Sequence record: LC494302.1
Direction: 5' to 3' (one strand)
Length of the DNA: 64,000 bases
Both the position numbers and the translations under genes were made by a program. The first letter of the stretch is position 1; each line of letters begins with the position of its first letter. Shown one piece after another: positions 4,211 through 61,932 of the stretch. The notes below the pieces were generated by a model. The model had not been told where the DNA came from. It saw nothing but the letters and a program-made list of their open reading frames with translations, and did no database searches.

Positions 4211-5059
4211 ATGAAACTTTATCTAATCGTTGACTACAGTAAGGGTTATTATGACTACGCAGAAGAATCTGAAGGGTATTGCTCGTCTACTAATGTCAAT
4301 GTACGCACCAGTAGTACACATGAGCATGAATCTATTACAAACCTAAAAGATTTCATCGCATATCGAGCATTTGAAAAGAATTTCTGTCGTAGTAGATATT
4401 CGAAGTTTGAGTACCCGTTAATTGATGTTCCTGATGAATTGATGTTCCAGTTAATGCTCACTGGAGTACAAGATTATGATTACATCGCGTACAATCACAT
4501 TACTAAGAAAATTTATATCGGTACGTCAACACATGACATTTCTATGTATGCATCATGCCCCGATGATCGAATGAATGATAGAAAATCATACTATAGTGGT
4601 TCAGTTGGTTCAAATGATTCATTAAATGAAAATTTATTCTTTGAGTACGAGTTTGATAATCATCGAGGGAAAAAAGACCGAGAAGATTATTGTACTGAAA
4701 TTGATAGTACCAATGGATATGAAGAAGTGAAAGAAGCGATAATGCCATATATCCTTGACAAGTACTACAAAGATTTTCAGTACTGTAGTAATTTTCTAAT
4801 CCGAAATTCTATCATAATCGGTCGTCAAAGTACTGCATTCTCTAAGTACTACAATGATTCCCCTGTTGCTGAAAATGAAAACTGTAATATTCTCTCAATC
4901 CCACGTGAAGATATGGTATTCATGTTCACATCTTTCATTGAAGATGATGAGTTGTATGTAAAAAACAAGCACAGGTTCATGCCAAGTAAGATTGAGGTTA
5001 TGAGAAGCTTAAGTGCAGATATCTTAACTAATTTCACTGAAAAAACAGAATACAACTGA
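4211..5059 (+). CDS. hypothetical protein
   Basis: 282 aa ORF, GGAG SD. Confidence 0.8.
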   Translation: MKLYLIVDYSKGYYDYAEESEGYCSSTNVNVRTSSTHEHESITNLKDFIAYRAFEKNFCRSRYSKFEYPLIDVPDELMFQLMLTGVQDYDYIAYNHITKKIYIGTSTHDISMYASCPDDRMNDRKSYYSGSVGSNDSLNENLFFEYEFDNHRGKKDREDYCTEIDSTNGYEEVKEAIMPYILDKYYKDFQYCSNFLIRNSIIIGRQSTAFSKYYNDSPVAENENCNILSIPREDMVFMFTSFIEDDELYVKNKHRFMPSKIEVMRSLSADILTNFTEKTEYN

Positions 5060-5085
5060 GACATACCATAAGTTTATGATATAAT
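5058..5085 (+). promoter_or_regulatory. extended -10 promoter (GRACA class) upstream of ncRNA copy 1
   Basis: GAGACA-N16-TATAAT, TGA immediately before the -10. Confidence 0.65.
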
Positions 5086-5087
5086 GT

Positions 5088-5122
5088 AAGGTGACAGCAG
5101 AATATGTTGTCGCCTTTTTTTT
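5088..5122 (+). terminator. intrinsic terminator overlapping the promoter start site
   Basis: AAGGTGACAGCA-gaata-TGTTGTCGCCTT plus T-tract. Confidence 0.75.
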
Positions 5123-5134
5123 AATCCTGAAAGG

Positions 5135-5730
5135 TTCCATATGGAAATGATTAAAGCCTAATCCACTCGAAAAGTAGAGGGTAGATGAGTAGTCCTTTCA
5201 GTACGAACAGCAAATGAAACCCGTTAGATGATGGCATAGTTTGAACCACTCACGGCAATGCGGCTGTATAAAGAACTCCAATAGGATAAAGAGAGTTCCT
5301 CGATAGACATATAAGGATCGCACCTTACCAATTATCTAAGGGAGATTTCATGAGAAATTTGCGGTCGGAATTATACAATATAGTTGCGTCCAAATTTTGT
5401 GAAATCAAATACAAGTACTGGTCATATGGTATTTGTATTATGTGTCGGGATGTTTAAGACCGACGACCGTTGCTACAAGAACCGCGATAGAGAGAAACAG
5501 AGCAACCCGCTTTCGTCTCGTAAGAGAATTCGTGATATGAACTATGTGAAGGCCACCAGCGTCAAACTTTTTTGTTCTTTCCCCTGCGGGGGGATGAAAT
5601 ATGCTCAAGCAAACCCCGTCAATATTAATTAAAAGAAAATAGTACTTGTAGAATTAGACATGCGTAGCATGGTAATTCTACTGATGTTGATGAAATCAAC
5701 GTCACGTATATTCATTGATGTTTCCATAGG
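5135..5730 (+). ncRNA. large structured non-coding RNA, copy 1 (family unassigned)
   Basis: ~600 nt intergenic, GC-enriched; colinear conserved blocks with 60410-61030; compensatory helix GACGA/TCGTC versus AGCGA/TCGCT; 5'/3' closing helix TATGGAAA/TTTCCATA; ends approximate. Confidence 0.8.
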
Positions 5731-5737
5731 AATAATG

Positions 5738-6296: not shown

Positions 6297-6818
6297 ATGT
6301 CGAAGAAGGATGCTTCGAAAAAACATTCAGTACATTTTAGTACTGGAAAAGATAACTGGACAACTCCAAAGGATTTCTTTGAAGATTTGGATGAACTCTG
6401 GGAATTTACACTAGATGCAGCATGTGTCAAAGAAACTGCATTGTGTGATAATTTTTTCACTCCAGAAGATGATTCACTGTCACAGGATTGGGGAAATAAT
6501 ATAGTTTGGTTGAATCCACCATATAGTGACTTGAAAACTTGGTTATCTAAAGCAGTAGATGCATATAATAACGGGGCAACTGTAGTTATTCTTGTACCCT
6601 CAAGAACCGATACAATTGCTTTTCAGGATTATGCTGCTAAAATATGTGATTGTATTTGTTTTATTAAGGGAAGATTGAGATTTGGTATACCAGAAGAACC
6701 CGATAAGAAAACAGATTCAGCACCATTTCCTTCGTGTCTGATAGTACTGGATAAGTACTTAACCACTGCTAAAATCAATTATCTTAAATCTCTTGGGTTG
6801 GTGATGAAGAATTTATGA
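6297..6818 (+). CDS. phage DNA N6-adenine methyltransferase (PF05869-type)
   Basis: WTTPKDFF, FTLDAAC, DSLSQDW, WLNPPYS, LVPSRTDT, FIKGRLRF, APFPS motifs. Confidence 0.92.
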   Translation: MSKKDASKKHSVHFSTGKDNWTTPKDFFEDLDELWEFTLDAACVKETALCDNFFTPEDDSLSQDWGNNIVWLNPPYSDLKTWLSKAVDAYNNGATVVILVPSRTDTIAFQDYAAKICDCICFIKGRLRFGIPEEPDKKTDSAPFPSCLIVLDKYLTTAKINYLKSLGLVMKNL

Positions 6819-59941: not shown

Positions 59942-60340
59942 ATGCTTAAAGAATTAGATTTTTCAAACTTAGAAATTATCAGTGCTGTAAAAAACATTTC
60001 CGATATGGGAGATGAGAAAGCAGTTCTTGTTACTATTACTTTTGTAAAAGAAAAAGATAGCTATAGCCATTTAACTGGTATTGAAGAACTAATTCATAAA
60101 ACCAATCTTGAGAATGATGGTAAACTCATCAAGCTTCAGGCTTCATATACGCAAAAAACGTCAAATTTTATAGACCTAAATAATGTAGTCAAGGTGGTAT
60201 ACAATCATCCTGAACACACATATAGGAACACGACAAGAAATGAAAATGTTGCTAACGATTCGAATATTATCGAAGATGTTGAATTCATAAACACAATTTT
60301 TGATCGTTGTTCTAAGGATTTAAAAAAAGTATACATGTAA
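59942..60340 (+). CDS. hypothetical protein
   Basis: 132 aa. Confidence 0.75.
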   Translation: MLKELDFSNLEIISAVKNISDMGDEKAVLVTITFVKEKDSYSHLTGIEELIHKTNLENDGKLIKLQASYTQKTSNFIDLNNVVKVVYNHPEHTYRNTTRNENVANDSNIIEDVEFINTIFDRCSKDLKKVYM

Positions 60341-60341
60341 T

Positions 60342-60369
60342 GGGACATTATATGTTCCAATGATATAAT
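60342..60369 (+). promoter_or_regulatory. extended -10 promoter (GRACA class) upstream of ncRNA copy 2
   Basis: GGGACA-N16-TATAAT; imperfect inverted repeat TGGGACAT/ATGTTCCA. Confidence 0.72.
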
Positions 60370-60409
60370 GTATATAGAAAATGACAACGGACATTGAAAA
60401 ATGGACACT

Positions 60410-61030
60410 GAGAACCTACTTCTCTTGAAAATGTAAAGGATAGATGAGCTTTACCGTTGTAGCGAACAGCAGAAGAAACCTGTTAGAGTACTGGCATTCA
60501 AACAAACACGATGTAAGACCACGAATCACGGCGACACGGCTGTATAAAGAACTCCGATAAGCATACAGAGAGTTCCTAGATAGATGTATAAGGTTCGCAC
60601 CTTACCAGATTTGCTAAGGGAGTTCAAGGATAGCGGACGCAATTTTTACAAGAAAGTTGCGTCCAAAATTTGAGAACAAGTACTACTTTGATCGAATAGA
60701 GTTAGTACTGAGTGCTGTTGATGAAAAGACCAGCGACCGTTGCATATGACTGCGATAGAGAGAAACCGAGCAACCCGCTTTCGCTCTCTAAATTTTGGTA
60801 CAAGAAAGATCCGTCCAAAATTTGAGAAATTCGCAATTCGATAATATCCGATGCCATCATCGTCAAGAGAGACTTAATTGTCTCTTTTTTATTACCTTCA
60901 TTCCCCTGTGGGGGGATGTAATAGTCCTCAACAAATCCCGTCAAGTTTTTAAAGTACATTATCATTTTCAGAAGGAACTAGTTTACGAAGTAAACGCAGT
61001 GACTTCTTGAGTTACGAGAGAACGAAGTGA
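60410..61030 (+). ncRNA. large structured non-coding RNA, copy 2 (family unassigned)
   Basis: colinear homology with 5135-5730; multiple hairpins; no credible ORF; ends approximate. Confidence 0.8.
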
Positions 61031-61459
61031 ATGAGTAACACAACGAAAATATCCGATAAATCCGAATTAACACAAATGTTATTCAAAGAATATTTTGAGT
61101 TTCAGATAAAAGACGAACATCAATTACCACAGCAATATTTGAAAAGAATTAAAGATCCGTCAGTAATTACTAAAGAAACTAATTTTTATAATAGTATTTT
61201 GGATTTCGTTAAATCAGTTCATACAACAAGACCTATTGTAGTTTTGTTTTTTGATAAATCTATTCCTTTAGTAGTTCCTGAAAATGTATTTTTTATTTCA
61301 GAAACTGATTTAAATAATCAAAGTACTGTAAGTAGATTAAGAAATTGCTTACTTGTAGTATGTGATTCTTCTTTGTATAATAACAGAATACTATGGGATA
61401 GAAGTAAACGCAATGCAGTTTCTGAAATGAATCCTGAAATTACCTTTATTATTAACTAA
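61031..61459 (+). CDS. hypothetical protein
   Basis: 142 aa. Confidence 0.7.
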   Translation: MSNTTKISDKSELTQMLFKEYFEFQIKDEHQLPQQYLKRIKDPSVITKETNFYNSILDFVKSVHTTRPIVVLFFDKSIPLVVPENVFFISETDLNNQSTVSRLRNCLLVVCDSSLYNNRILWDRSKRNAVSEMNPEITFIIN

Positions 61460-61491: not shown

Positions 61492-61932
61492 ATGGAAGAT
61501 ATTAATGATTTACGACACGTAATGGACTTTATCGGAAGTACTGAAGAAGATAATTCGTATGATGAAGTACTATTAACTTTTATTGAAAATAGTTTGTTTT
61601 TAAGTTCTGCTGCACATAACTGGCACTTACAATGTCATTTTTATACAAAGCATTTACAATTAGATGAACTATATAAAGAATTACCAGAATATGTGGACGC
61701 ATTTGTTGAAGGTATCATGAATAATCGTGGTGCTTTACAAGTTGGAACTGGTAATAGTTATCGTTTTACACCAATTGAAGATTGTGTACCAATTCTTGAA
61801 GAATATGTTGAGCAATGTAGAGCAATTCATGATATGCTTGAAGAATCAGGTGATTACGGCAGTGTAAACACATTAGAAGATATTATGAGTTTTGTTGAAG
61901 GAACACTTTACAAACTTAAAGTTTTACAATAA
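61492..61932 (+). CDS. Dps/ferritin-like protein
   Basis: AHNWHL.....KHLQLDELY..L.EYVDAFVE; YKLKVL C-terminus. Confidence 0.82.
   Translation: MEDINDLRHVMDFIGSTEEDNSYDEVLLTFIENSLFLSSAAHNWHLQCHFYTKHLQLDELYKELPEYVDAFVEGIMNNRGALQVGTGNSYRFTPIEDCVPILEEYVEQCRAIHDMLEESGDYGSVNTLEDIMSFVEGTLYKLKVLQ

Follow-up and report, generated by a model that had tools for sequence, protein, structure and literature searches.

A predicted large structured RNA gene carried in several diverged copies by Escherichia phage SP27 and related jumbo phages

Introduction

To our knowledge, elaborate conserved folds are found in very few bacterial and phage RNAs of more than 500 nt (the rRNAs, RNase P, self-splicing introns, OLE, GOLLD, ROOL, and few others), and several such large RNAs have proved to be ribozymes or unprecedented RNA-only assemblies. 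Folded transcripts of comparable length also serve replication: in ColE1, a promoter gives rise to RNA II, a folded transcript of ~550 nt with G-run and C-run elements, which primes DNA synthesis through a persistent RNA–DNA hybrid; in phage T4, promoter-dependent origins are found at several sites per genome. The pRNA of phage phi29 is ~170 nt long, single-copy, and confined to phi29-like podoviruses with protein-primed genomes. A phylogenetically covarying pairing of its loops joins separate molecules into a ring (see Ding et al. 2011, cited in PMC12286853). ROOL and GOLLD are phage-borne RNAs of ~600–800 nt that form RNA-only cages and whose function is unknown (PMC12286853); in ROOL, a covarying kissing loop regarded as "tertiary" proved to be intermolecular (PMC12286853). 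Long, unexplained non-coding transcripts are also on record for a related jumbo phage of Pseudomonas, PA5oct, in which RNA-seq revealed ncRNA001–004 (236–619 nt), with ncRNA004 measuring 619 nt (PMC7318152).

The present analysis concerns a 64,000-nt stretch of the genome of Escherichia phage SP27 (LC494302.1; genus Asteriusvirus, species PBECO4; genome 347 kb), corresponding to positions 186001–250000 and referred to here, over its whole length, as the window. SP27 is placed among the Rak2-like jumbo phages. The G+C content of the window is ~33%, and its ORFs lie nearly all on the plus strand. A preliminary description, made from the letters of the window, had proposed that two intergenic gaps hold diverged copies of one large structured RNA, with the second copy at 60410–61030.

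Results

Location and Parts of the Two Copies

Two gaps without ORFs and of the same size class occur in the window, as the preliminary description had stated: one of ~690 nt (60341–61030), bounded by ORFs 59942–60340 and 61031–61459, which holds copy 2, and one of ~680 nt (5060–5737), which holds copy 1. In a pairwise alignment the two copies show 75% column identity, with long identical blocks in a common order and indels between them, so the claim of shared, ordered blocks is borne out. The coordinates first given for copy 2 fall slightly short: the element reaches from the promoter at 60342 to ~61040, and its 3′ end oversteps the start codon at 61031. When a covariance model of the central domain (CM R1) was run on the 64-kb window, copy 2 scored 128.9 bits and copy 1 scored 99.9 bits, with the third-ranked match at 14.8 bits (E=0.16). 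The proteins encoded on the flanks of copy 1 and copy 2 belong to different PHROG/Pfam families, mostly uncharacterised, in agreement with the earlier remark that the neighbours are unrelated. The parts of the two copies are as follows (positions in the window).

60342–60369, plus strand: predicted promoter of copy 2, with −35-like GGGACA (60342–60347), a 16-nt spacer, and extended −10 TGATATAAT (60361–60369)
60376–60411, plus strand: putative variable 5′ leader, 3′ of the predicted start and ahead of the first conserved helix; low conservation
60412–60607, plus strand: 5′ domain with P1–P6, an invariant GAUGAG, and an invariant ACCA; drawn from helices and covariation
60416–60443, plus strand: P1
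60448–60463, plus strand: P2
60466–60470/60539–60543, plus strand: P3
60480–60483/60528–60531, plus strand: P4
60549–60575, plus strand: P5
60590–60603, plus strand: P6
60604–60607, plus strand: invariant ACCA, end of the 5′ domain
60635–60664, plus strand: peripheral module M1, hairpin GGACGCAA...TTGCGTCC with an ACAA-type loop, from sequence and alignment; its motif recurs as M2
60679–60709, plus strand: P8 hairpin, AGTACTA...TAGTACT; 11/11 pairs changed on both sides
60691–60697, plus strand: 5′ strand of pseudoknot PK1, AUCGAAU, which is the P8 loop
60710–60835, plus strand: central domain with P9, P10, P11, P12, and M2; highest conservation, region of the CM R1 match
60734–60743, plus strand: invariant CGACCGUUGC in the central domain
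60751–60755/60831–60835, plus strand: P11
60758–60783, plus strand: P12, with invariant loop ...GCAACCCGCUUUCG
60793–60820, plus strand: module M2
60836–60842, plus strand: 3′ strand of PK1, AUUCGAU, partner of 60691–60697; found by covariation scan
60850–60864, plus strand: P14 hairpin, ending in the first invariant CGUCA; conserved, with little covariation
60867–60893, plus strand: optional hairpin GAGAGAC-UUAAUU-GUCUCUC-UUUUUAUU with a U-run, resembling an intrinsic terminator; read from the sequence
60894–60946, plus strand: 3′ domain, with a pyrimidine tract, P15, GAUG, and the second invariant CGUCA
60902–60915, plus strand: P15, UCCCC-UGU-GGGGG
60939–60943, plus strand: second invariant CGUCA
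60971–61039, plus strand: 3′ extension of two hairpins, overlapping the ATG of ORF 61031–61459
60971–61006, plus strand: hairpin GAAG..[GUUUAC-GAA-GUAAAC]..CUUC of the 3′ extension
60981–60995, plus strand: GTTTAC-GAA-GTAAAC, inner part of that hairpin
61011–61039, plus strand: hairpin GUUAC..GAACGAAGUGA..GUAAC of the 3′ extension
5058–5085, plus strand: predicted promoter of copy 1, GAGACA-N16-TATAAT with TG
5058–5730, plus strand: paralog copy 1, with its core at 5154–5622
5421–5427 with 5535–5540, plus strand: PK1 of copy 1, GUCAUAU with AUAUGA

Every hairpin named in the preliminary description is found in copy 2 (60635–60664, 60679–60709, 60867–60893, and 60981–60995). The terminator-like hairpin at 60867–60893, which a simple scan did not flag, has a counterpart at this position in about two-thirds of 45 family members and is missing from copy 1; its U-run is found mainly in the jumbo-phage copies. 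The 3′ extension consists, in 28 relatives, of a GAAC..GUGA motif and a hairpin with 9/9 pairs covarying, and the version in copy 2 is rearranged and ends at ~61040. The succession of a hairpin and ACCA at 60590–60607 suggested a tRNA-like reading, which was rejected: the loop varies among members in sequence and in length (4–7 nt), and a loop of variable length means that the hairpin at 60590–60603 is not a T-arm.

A Conserved Fold on the Plus Strand

Structure statistics were obtained from an alignment of 45 full-length representatives, each <96% identical to the others. RNAalifold predicts from this alignment a structure of 69 pairs in 15 helices. Standard pairs fill 97.6% of its cells, vs. 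37–45% when the 3′ partners are slid by 1–3 columns, and both partners are changed in 448 cells, vs. 41–82 after sliding; none of 500 shuffles reached the observed value on any measure. A covariation scan outside the RNAalifold structure revealed one antiparallel run, between the P8 loop and the strand just 3′ of P11. In the resulting 7-bp pseudoknot, PK1, both partners are changed at 7/7 pairs, and 100% of cells are paired. Addition of PK1, hairpin P6, and one isolated tertiary pair to the 69 pairs gives an 81-pair structure, in which 97.1% of 3535 cells are paired (39–44% slid) and 548 cells are double changes (45–84 slid), with 0/500 shuffles reaching these values on five measures and compensatory changes at 50 of the 81 pairs. 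The covariation check on homologs that the preliminary description had called for turned out in favor of the RNA. Folded as a single sequence, copy 2 has a minimum free energy z of −3.7 relative to its own shuffles.

The orientation of the fold can be read from the wobble pairs. The helices contain 255 G-U cells vs. 19 A-C cells, and 97.6% of cells pair when the alignment is read as the plus strand vs. 89.8% as the minus strand; the excess of G-U over A-C assigns the fold to the plus strand, the same strand as the promoter. These observations bear on the view that the conserved blocks are a DNA-level element (a protein-binding or recombination site) or an overlooked gene for a small protein. 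Hypothetical CDSs are annotated here in SP27 and other records, sequence conservation is high, and a 25-nt motif, ATAGATCCGTCCAAAATTTGAG, recurs in the 45-member alignment with a highly conserved sequence, as might be expected of such an element. Neither a DNA site nor a reading frame, however, accounts for compensatory changes at most pairs or for the strand-specific asymmetry of G-U and A-C. The spacings between invariant anchors are spread over every class modulo 3, and 18 of the 45 members have no open frame on either strand across the most conserved part. The annotation itself is inconsistent, with none, 1, 2, 3, or 6 CDSs at these loci depending on the record. Frames shift among members, stops occur in many of the members, and tblastn similarity arises solely from conservation of the DNA, so the protein-coding reading was rejected; the hypothetical minus-strand CDS within copy 2 in the SP27 record is best seen, from these sequence comparisons, as an artefact. 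The DNA-element or protein-gene explanation is thus largely refuted, and we assign it next to no weight.

Selection on RNA structure, as originally proposed, in a large RNA that has only itself and its promoter in common with copy 1, is strongly upheld by covariation in 45 homologs, the strand-specific G-U pairs, the lack of a conserved frame, and a conserved promoter. Comparative sequence evidence of this kind makes it almost certain that the locus is a gene for a structured RNA.

Invariant Nucleotides and the Possibility of Catalysis

More than 100 nucleotides are invariant, and these lie in junctions and loops, largely outside the helices. Unpaired sequence that is invariant to this extent speaks for an exact three-dimensional architecture, be it a catalytic site, a surface that binds protein, or an interface for assembly. 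Some of the possible long-range contacts involve such positions. The second invariant CGUCA may pair with the 5′ GAUGAG, a tentative contact because its pairs never vary. Likewise, the positions of a putative long-range closing helix (5′ UGA with 3′ UCA) and of the GAUG/CGUC alternatives are invariant across the alignment, which leaves these pairings tentative.

An active site would be expected if the transcript were a ribozyme that processes itself or another nucleic acid, with the invariant junction nucleotides forming the catalytic center. The level of conservation is that of RNase P and self-splicing introns, the invariant positions, mostly unpaired, occur alongside a pseudoknot and multi-way junctions, and the repeated GAUG and CGUCA sequences permit alternative pairings, all of which suits a catalytic RNA. 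However, the ribozyme and intron families of Rfam 15 gave no match even at E up to 10, and neither flanking exons nor a conserved substrate is present. The core of the hammerhead is an invariant CUGANGA...GAAA, and the hammerhead-like GAUGAG...CGAA of the SP27 RNA departs from it at hammerhead-invariant positions: the equivalent of U4 is an A that is paired in P1, and the equivalent of A13 varies (A, C, or U), so that the hammerhead reading of GAUGAG...GAA was rejected. A ribozyme is, on this evidence, an unlikely explanation.

Distribution and Genomic Settings

By blastn, the element is present in 72 phage records, all of them from jumbo phages (310–386 kb), at 4 or 5 places per record. The listed hosts are Escherichia, Klebsiella, Salmonella, Erwinia, Yersinia, Cronobacter, Pectobacterium, Serratia, and Xanthomonas; Xanthomonas is represented by two jumbo phages, and the remaining phages and islands belong to Enterobacterales. 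Further loci were collected by pattern scans of IMG/VR, metagenomes, and bacterial genomes, with chance matches removed by nhmmer. Besides many metagenome contigs, these include homologs in Serratia fonticola (complete chromosome), Serratia sp., Enterobacter chinensis, Enterobacteriaceae RIT714, three MAGs, and two E. coli chromosomes. The bacterial copies occupy AT-rich, ORF-free gaps of 1.3–1.6 kb that adjoin a large serine recombinase or a tyrosine integrase; a recurrent order is serine recombinase, RNA, and a convergent cI-type repressor gene, with a cro-like gene beyond. In E. coli LR-29-1, the copy lies in an unannotated gap of a ~10-kb island inserted beside ffs. The same island holds a candidate defence system, PDC-M45. 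No tRNA or tmRNA gene was detected by ARAGORN in the 64-kb window, and tRNAs are found near only 2 of 42 related loci, >3 kb away.

The dispersal of several copies over a genome of 350 kb would be understandable if each were a replication origin at which a lasting hybrid of the structured transcript with DNA primes synthesis, in the manner of ColE1 RNA II or the T4 origins. The size is near that of RNA II, conserved C-run and G-run elements are present (60903–60916), one bacterial copy adjoins ParB-like genes, and the promoter is similar to a class that phage CBB has upstream of its DNA-synthesis genes (PMC5259590). Against this stand the blastn search of 72,556 PLSDB plasmids, in which no match was obtained, and the maintenance of tertiary structure and a pseudoknot across unrelated backbones, which exceeds the needs of a primer. 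Downstream of the element there is no conserved AT-rich unwinding element and there are no iterons, and in copy 2 a gene follows directly on the 3′ side; neither copy coincides with an inflection of the cumulative GC skew, which is weak evidence for such phages. An origin of replication at each copy is accordingly quite improbable.

Predicted Promoter, Putative Transcript Ends, and Probable Independence of the Gene

Both copies are preceded by promoters of one class, as the preliminary description had it: GGGACA or GAGACA, N16, and TATAAT, each with TG. The promoter of copy 2 has 10/12 matches, with TG, and places the inferred transcription start near 60376. About 10 promoters of the class TG(G/A)GACA...TGATATAAT occur on the plus strand of the window. 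Within the family, TGnTATAAT (at least 5/6 matches) is present upstream of 41 of the 45 members, with a −35 element of the TGAAAC/TGGGACA type. This class resembles the "divergent RpoD-like" promoter of the related phages CBB and GAP32, which combines TGAAACG with a normal −10 (PMC5259590).

At copy 1, the terminator of the upstream gene (5088–5116 and a T-run) overlaps the predicted transcription start. The wider surroundings of the RNA speak for a transcription unit of its own. In phage Hallingskeid, the neighbours on both sides of the RNA are on the opposite strand, and the RNA is convergent with the next gene (ParB or cI genes) in Serratia fonticola and Enterobacter chinensis. Several phage copies have, 3′ of the conserved region, a hairpin between an A-run and a T-rich tail (AAAAAAACCAGC...GCTGG); this hairpin is read from its sequence as a two-way terminator. 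Among the contexts compared, no protein family is common to all neighbourhoods of the RNA. A membrane protein of 257–327 aa, encoded downstream in 10 bacterial and prophage loci, was considered as a partner and rejected; it is missing from the jumbo phages and is therefore not a general partner of the RNA. Given its own promoter, the antisense and convergent neighbours, the putative two-way terminator, and the lack of a common neighbour family, the element is very probably a stand-alone RNA that would act in trans.

An alternative is a cis-acting leader, i.e., a giant riboswitch or processive antiterminator that controls read-through of the internal terminator-like hairpin. In the SP27 window both copies lie upstream of co-oriented genes, copy 2 contains the hairpin and U-run at 60867–60893 and covers the next start codon with its 3′ extension, and a switch could arise from the alternative pairings of GAUG and CGUCA. 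A leader should nevertheless precede related genes in a consistent orientation, and the genes downstream of the copies are unrelated, the Hallingskeid neighbours are both antisense, and the next gene is convergent in S. fonticola and E. chinensis; the hairpin to be read through is itself missing from copy 1 and from about one-third of the members. As a general explanation the leader has a low probability. For copy 2 in particular, which has no clear terminator ahead of the next gene, the 3′ extension over the start codon and the internal terminator-like hairpin mean that the RNA may be co-transcribed with, or influence, ORF 61031–61459. The hairpin at 60867–60893, if it is a functional terminator, would truncate transcripts ahead of the conserved 3′ domain.

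Paralogs within a Genome

The preliminary description had counted two diverged paralogs. The divergence stands, but the count was too low: BLAST finds four copies in SP27, and some relatives have 5. Two of the SP27 copies are inside the window and a third is near 325.2–325.8 kb of the genome. A tree built from the 45 cores places copies of the same genome in different clades, with different phage genera in each clade, which indicates that the duplication is old and that each lineage has been retained. Old, retained paralogs fit the earlier suggestion of sub-functionalisation, although they are not proof of it. The hetero-oligomer formation suggested alongside it gains no support: PK1 is the only long-range pairing that might be intermolecular, and the three SP27-type paralogs that could be read have three different PK1 sequences; if PK1 is intermolecular, such paralog-specific sequences argue for self-specific rather than mixed pairing. 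The copy in the E. coli island nests within a jumbo-phage clade, beside a copy from a 357,154-bp contig, and this placement indicates that the gene has moved between virulent phages and bacterial islands.

Searches for Known Relatives

At gathering thresholds, Rfam 15 gave 0 matches in the whole window, and at seven bacterial loci its sole matches were a TPP riboswitch and STnc450, neither of them within the element. With the limit relaxed to E of 10, both copies returned only chance matches to snoRNAs and sRNAs, far below threshold; 5–6 diverse relatives searched at E up to 1 gave nothing relevant. The Rfam 15 covariance models of ROOL, GOLLD, OLE, raiA, and HEARO did not match. The PA5oct ncRNAs were considered as homologs and rejected (nhmmer E > 0.8; no CM R1 match inside any of them). 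A faint local resemblance to the repeated module was seen in PA5oct ncRNA004.

No description of the RNA family was found in the open-access and bioRxiv literature, including a search with invariant strings and two large catalogues of candidate RNAs; the same literature yielded no RNA-seq for any of the carrier phages. The genome papers for phages Sharanji and fEgEco12 make no mention of non-coding regions. A phage RNA catalogue of 2023 contains motifs of 29–151 nt only, and fragments of the SP27 RNA could be among them. Within Rfam 15 and the open-access and bioRxiv literature, the family is apparently undescribed.

Discussion

The observations as a whole are best explained by a stand-alone non-coding RNA gene of ~0.65 kb whose fold would act in trans, perhaps as a particle-type cargo; we put the probability of this combined reading at roughly 0.55. 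Its steps can be laid out as follows. Host sigma-70 RNA polymerase would initiate at the extended −10 promoter, and the transcript would fold into at least 17 helices and a 7-bp pseudoknot, with its >100 invariant nucleotides placed in the junctions and loops of that fold. The folded RNA would then work in trans, neither as a leader for its neighbours nor as a DNA site. The fold would be the functional unit, a compact RNA particle that either assembles by itself or recruits protein, as in ROOL and GOLLD, and phages and integrative islands would carry the RNA as accessory cargo with an effect on a host or rival-phage process during infection.

The components of this reading differ in firmness. 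The sequence comparisons establish homology, distribution, and paralogy, the fold and its strand, the lack of coding, and the conserved promoter, whereas transcription by the host polymerase, action in trans, assembly or scaffolding, and a biological role are inferences. That the RNA operates as a particle or scaffold is a tentative proposal made by analogy, and it is favored because ROOL and GOLLD are the closest precedents. More speculative still, and doubtful as it stands, is the idea that the RNA belongs to a new self-assembling or catalytic class of large giant-phage RNA, in which PK1 would be intermolecular, as in ROOL, and through its paralog-specific sequences the four RNAs of one genome would form separate, non-mixing particles. 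If so, each kind of particle would have its own part to play in the takeover of the host or in conflict with defence systems, and such a role would explain why copies have been captured by defence-type islands and prophages.

Several aspects of the family make it worth pursuing. Four old paralogs per genome constitute a natural experiment in RNA specialisation, and the passage of the gene from virulent giant phages to islands or prophages of bacteria, or the reverse, may be a sign that it takes part in phage–host or phage–phage conflict. The carriers include cultivable E. coli phages, such as Sharanji, which is grown on K-12 MG1655, so that genetics and biochemistry should be straightforward. 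In phage annotations these loci are either empty or filled with spurious "hypothetical proteins", and with a covariance model the annotation of dozens of genome records would be corrected.

Among described systems, those at some distance share individual traits with the SP27 RNA. It resembles ColE1 RNA II and the T4 origins in combining a promoter with a folded transcript, in occurring at several sites per genome, and in its G-run and C-run elements; it differs from them in that it is on none of the PLSDB plasmids, has far more conserved tertiary structure, and lacks a downstream unwinding element. With the phi29 pRNA it shares a similarly clean covarying loop pairing, PK1, whereas the pRNA is single-copy and ~170 nt long, and nothing ties the SP27 RNA to packaging.

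The likeness to GOLLD lies in a large ornate RNA of phages and prophages, composed of well conserved and variable parts, with unknown function (PMC12286853); the SP27 RNA is shorter (~650 nt vs. >800), occurs without tRNA arrays and in other hosts, and has no Rfam match. From ROOL it differs in giving no match to the Rfam model, in being rarely near tRNA genes, and in having 4–5 diverged paralogs per genome; the carriers of ROOL are rumen and Lactobacillales elements, and those of the SP27 RNA are the Enterobacterales phages and islands and the two Xanthomonas jumbo phages. Of the traits that characterise ROOL and GOLLD, a frequent location beside tRNA arrays is not seen, and the large stand-alone RNA gene of phages and prophages is, both in the jumbo-phage records and in the integrase-adjoining copies. 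Like ROOL, the SP27 RNA is ~600 nt long, has many helices and pseudoknots, occupies a stand-alone phage or prophage gene, and has no known protein partner; both RNAs also have a covarying long-range loop pairing, which in ROOL is intermolecular (PMC12286853). The family is new in that it has no detectable relative, but RNAs of its kind, large and ornate and carried by phages, have precedents in ROOL and GOLLD.

Repeated Motif and Three-Way Covariation

Copy 2 of the RNA contains two instances (window 60635-60676 and 60793-60826) of a ~25-nt motif, (U)ACAAnAnAG(A/U)U(C/G)CGUCCAAAAUUUGAG, which the other family members have at one of two positions or at both; conservation of its 3' strand is far above what pairing alone requires. 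Three columns of the A3 alignment of the RNA's homologs (517, 529, and 541; window ~60759, 60770, and 60781) covary, such that two purines (A/G) of the repeated GRGAG...AGRGC both track a single pyrimidine (U/C) of CUUYCG, a pattern in the aligned sequences that points either to a base triple or to two helices that form as alternatives.

The SP27 record annotates a hypothetical protein within copy 2:
60702-60959, -, EO157G_4880

Records of other phages carry from zero to six small CDSs at the RNA's locus, differing among records, and these CDSs, like EO157G_4880, are probably artefacts. Two genes downstream of copy 2 lies a gene for a DUF5856 protein (window 61492-61932), which PHROGs labels a "starvation-inducible transcriptional regulator." For copy 1, the gene two positions downstream (window 6297-6818) encodes a Dam-type DNA adenine methyltransferase.

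Bacterial, Prophage, and PA5oct Loci

The copy in E. coli LR-29-1 (locus L109; NZ_AP027515.1 ~3,472,900-3,483,600) resides on a ~10-kb island inserted next to ffs. Besides hypothetical genes and an integrase that IS3 has split, the island has a set of three genes: in PADLOC, two of the encoded proteins (dual-OB and DUF488) match PDC-M45, a candidate defence system, and the DUF4326 gene has no hit. In prophage-type copies, a long inverted repeat (for example, CCAAAGATAAATTA...TAATTTATCTTTGG) overlaps a TTGGTATAAT element located 9-10 nt before the conserved core (L105:4140-4200, -; also upstream of the core at loci L038 and L053); the repeat may serve as an operator or form a hairpin in the 5' part of the RNA, and a second TGAAAC-type promoter lies ~88 nt upstream.

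Near the RNA, the following loci encode members of a protein family (257-327 aa, no Pfam family) that has hydrophobic segments at the N terminus:
L108:127-987
L109:21259-22032
L044:6290-7273
L090:5039-5899
L100:7312-7986

Judged from these segments, the protein is probably a membrane protein. Its gene lies downstream of the RNA, in the same orientation, at 10 bacterial or prophage loci, which have three different integrase types, and the family is absent from the jumbo phages; protein and RNA may travel as a cassette.

Among RNA-seq transcripts of Pseudomonas jumbo phage PA5oct (L110:1117-1735 and L111:764-999), ncRNA001 and ncRNA004 have a AAGGAUGAUGCU stretch in common, and a UAUAGAUUCCGU...GAAAGUUGA stretch of ncRNA004 faintly resembles the RNA's repeated module; neither resemblance was significant by nhmmer or covariance model.

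Promoters of the Window and the Start of Copy 1

A recurrent promoter class on the + strand of the window combines TGATATAAT with TG(G/A)GACA or TGGACA ~13 nt upstream:
1618, 3376, 5077, 11159, 15047, +, promoter-class sites
18658, 20914, 26368, 35606, 60361, +, promoter-class sites

TGnTATAAT occurs 18 times in the window (9.2 expected), 16 of them on the + strand. At copy 1, the promoter abuts a strong predicted terminator:
5088-5116 (region 5077-5124), 12-bp stem followed by T8

This terminator begins 3 nt past the -10 element, and therefore transcripts from the promoter would start within its 5' arm. Such a layout, found also in Salmonella phage 7t3, may terminate transcription of the upstream gene while the RNA's own transcripts escape. 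The recurrent promoter class is similar to the TGAAACG promoters, termed "divergent RpoD-like," that have been described in phages CBB and GAP32 (PMC5259590).
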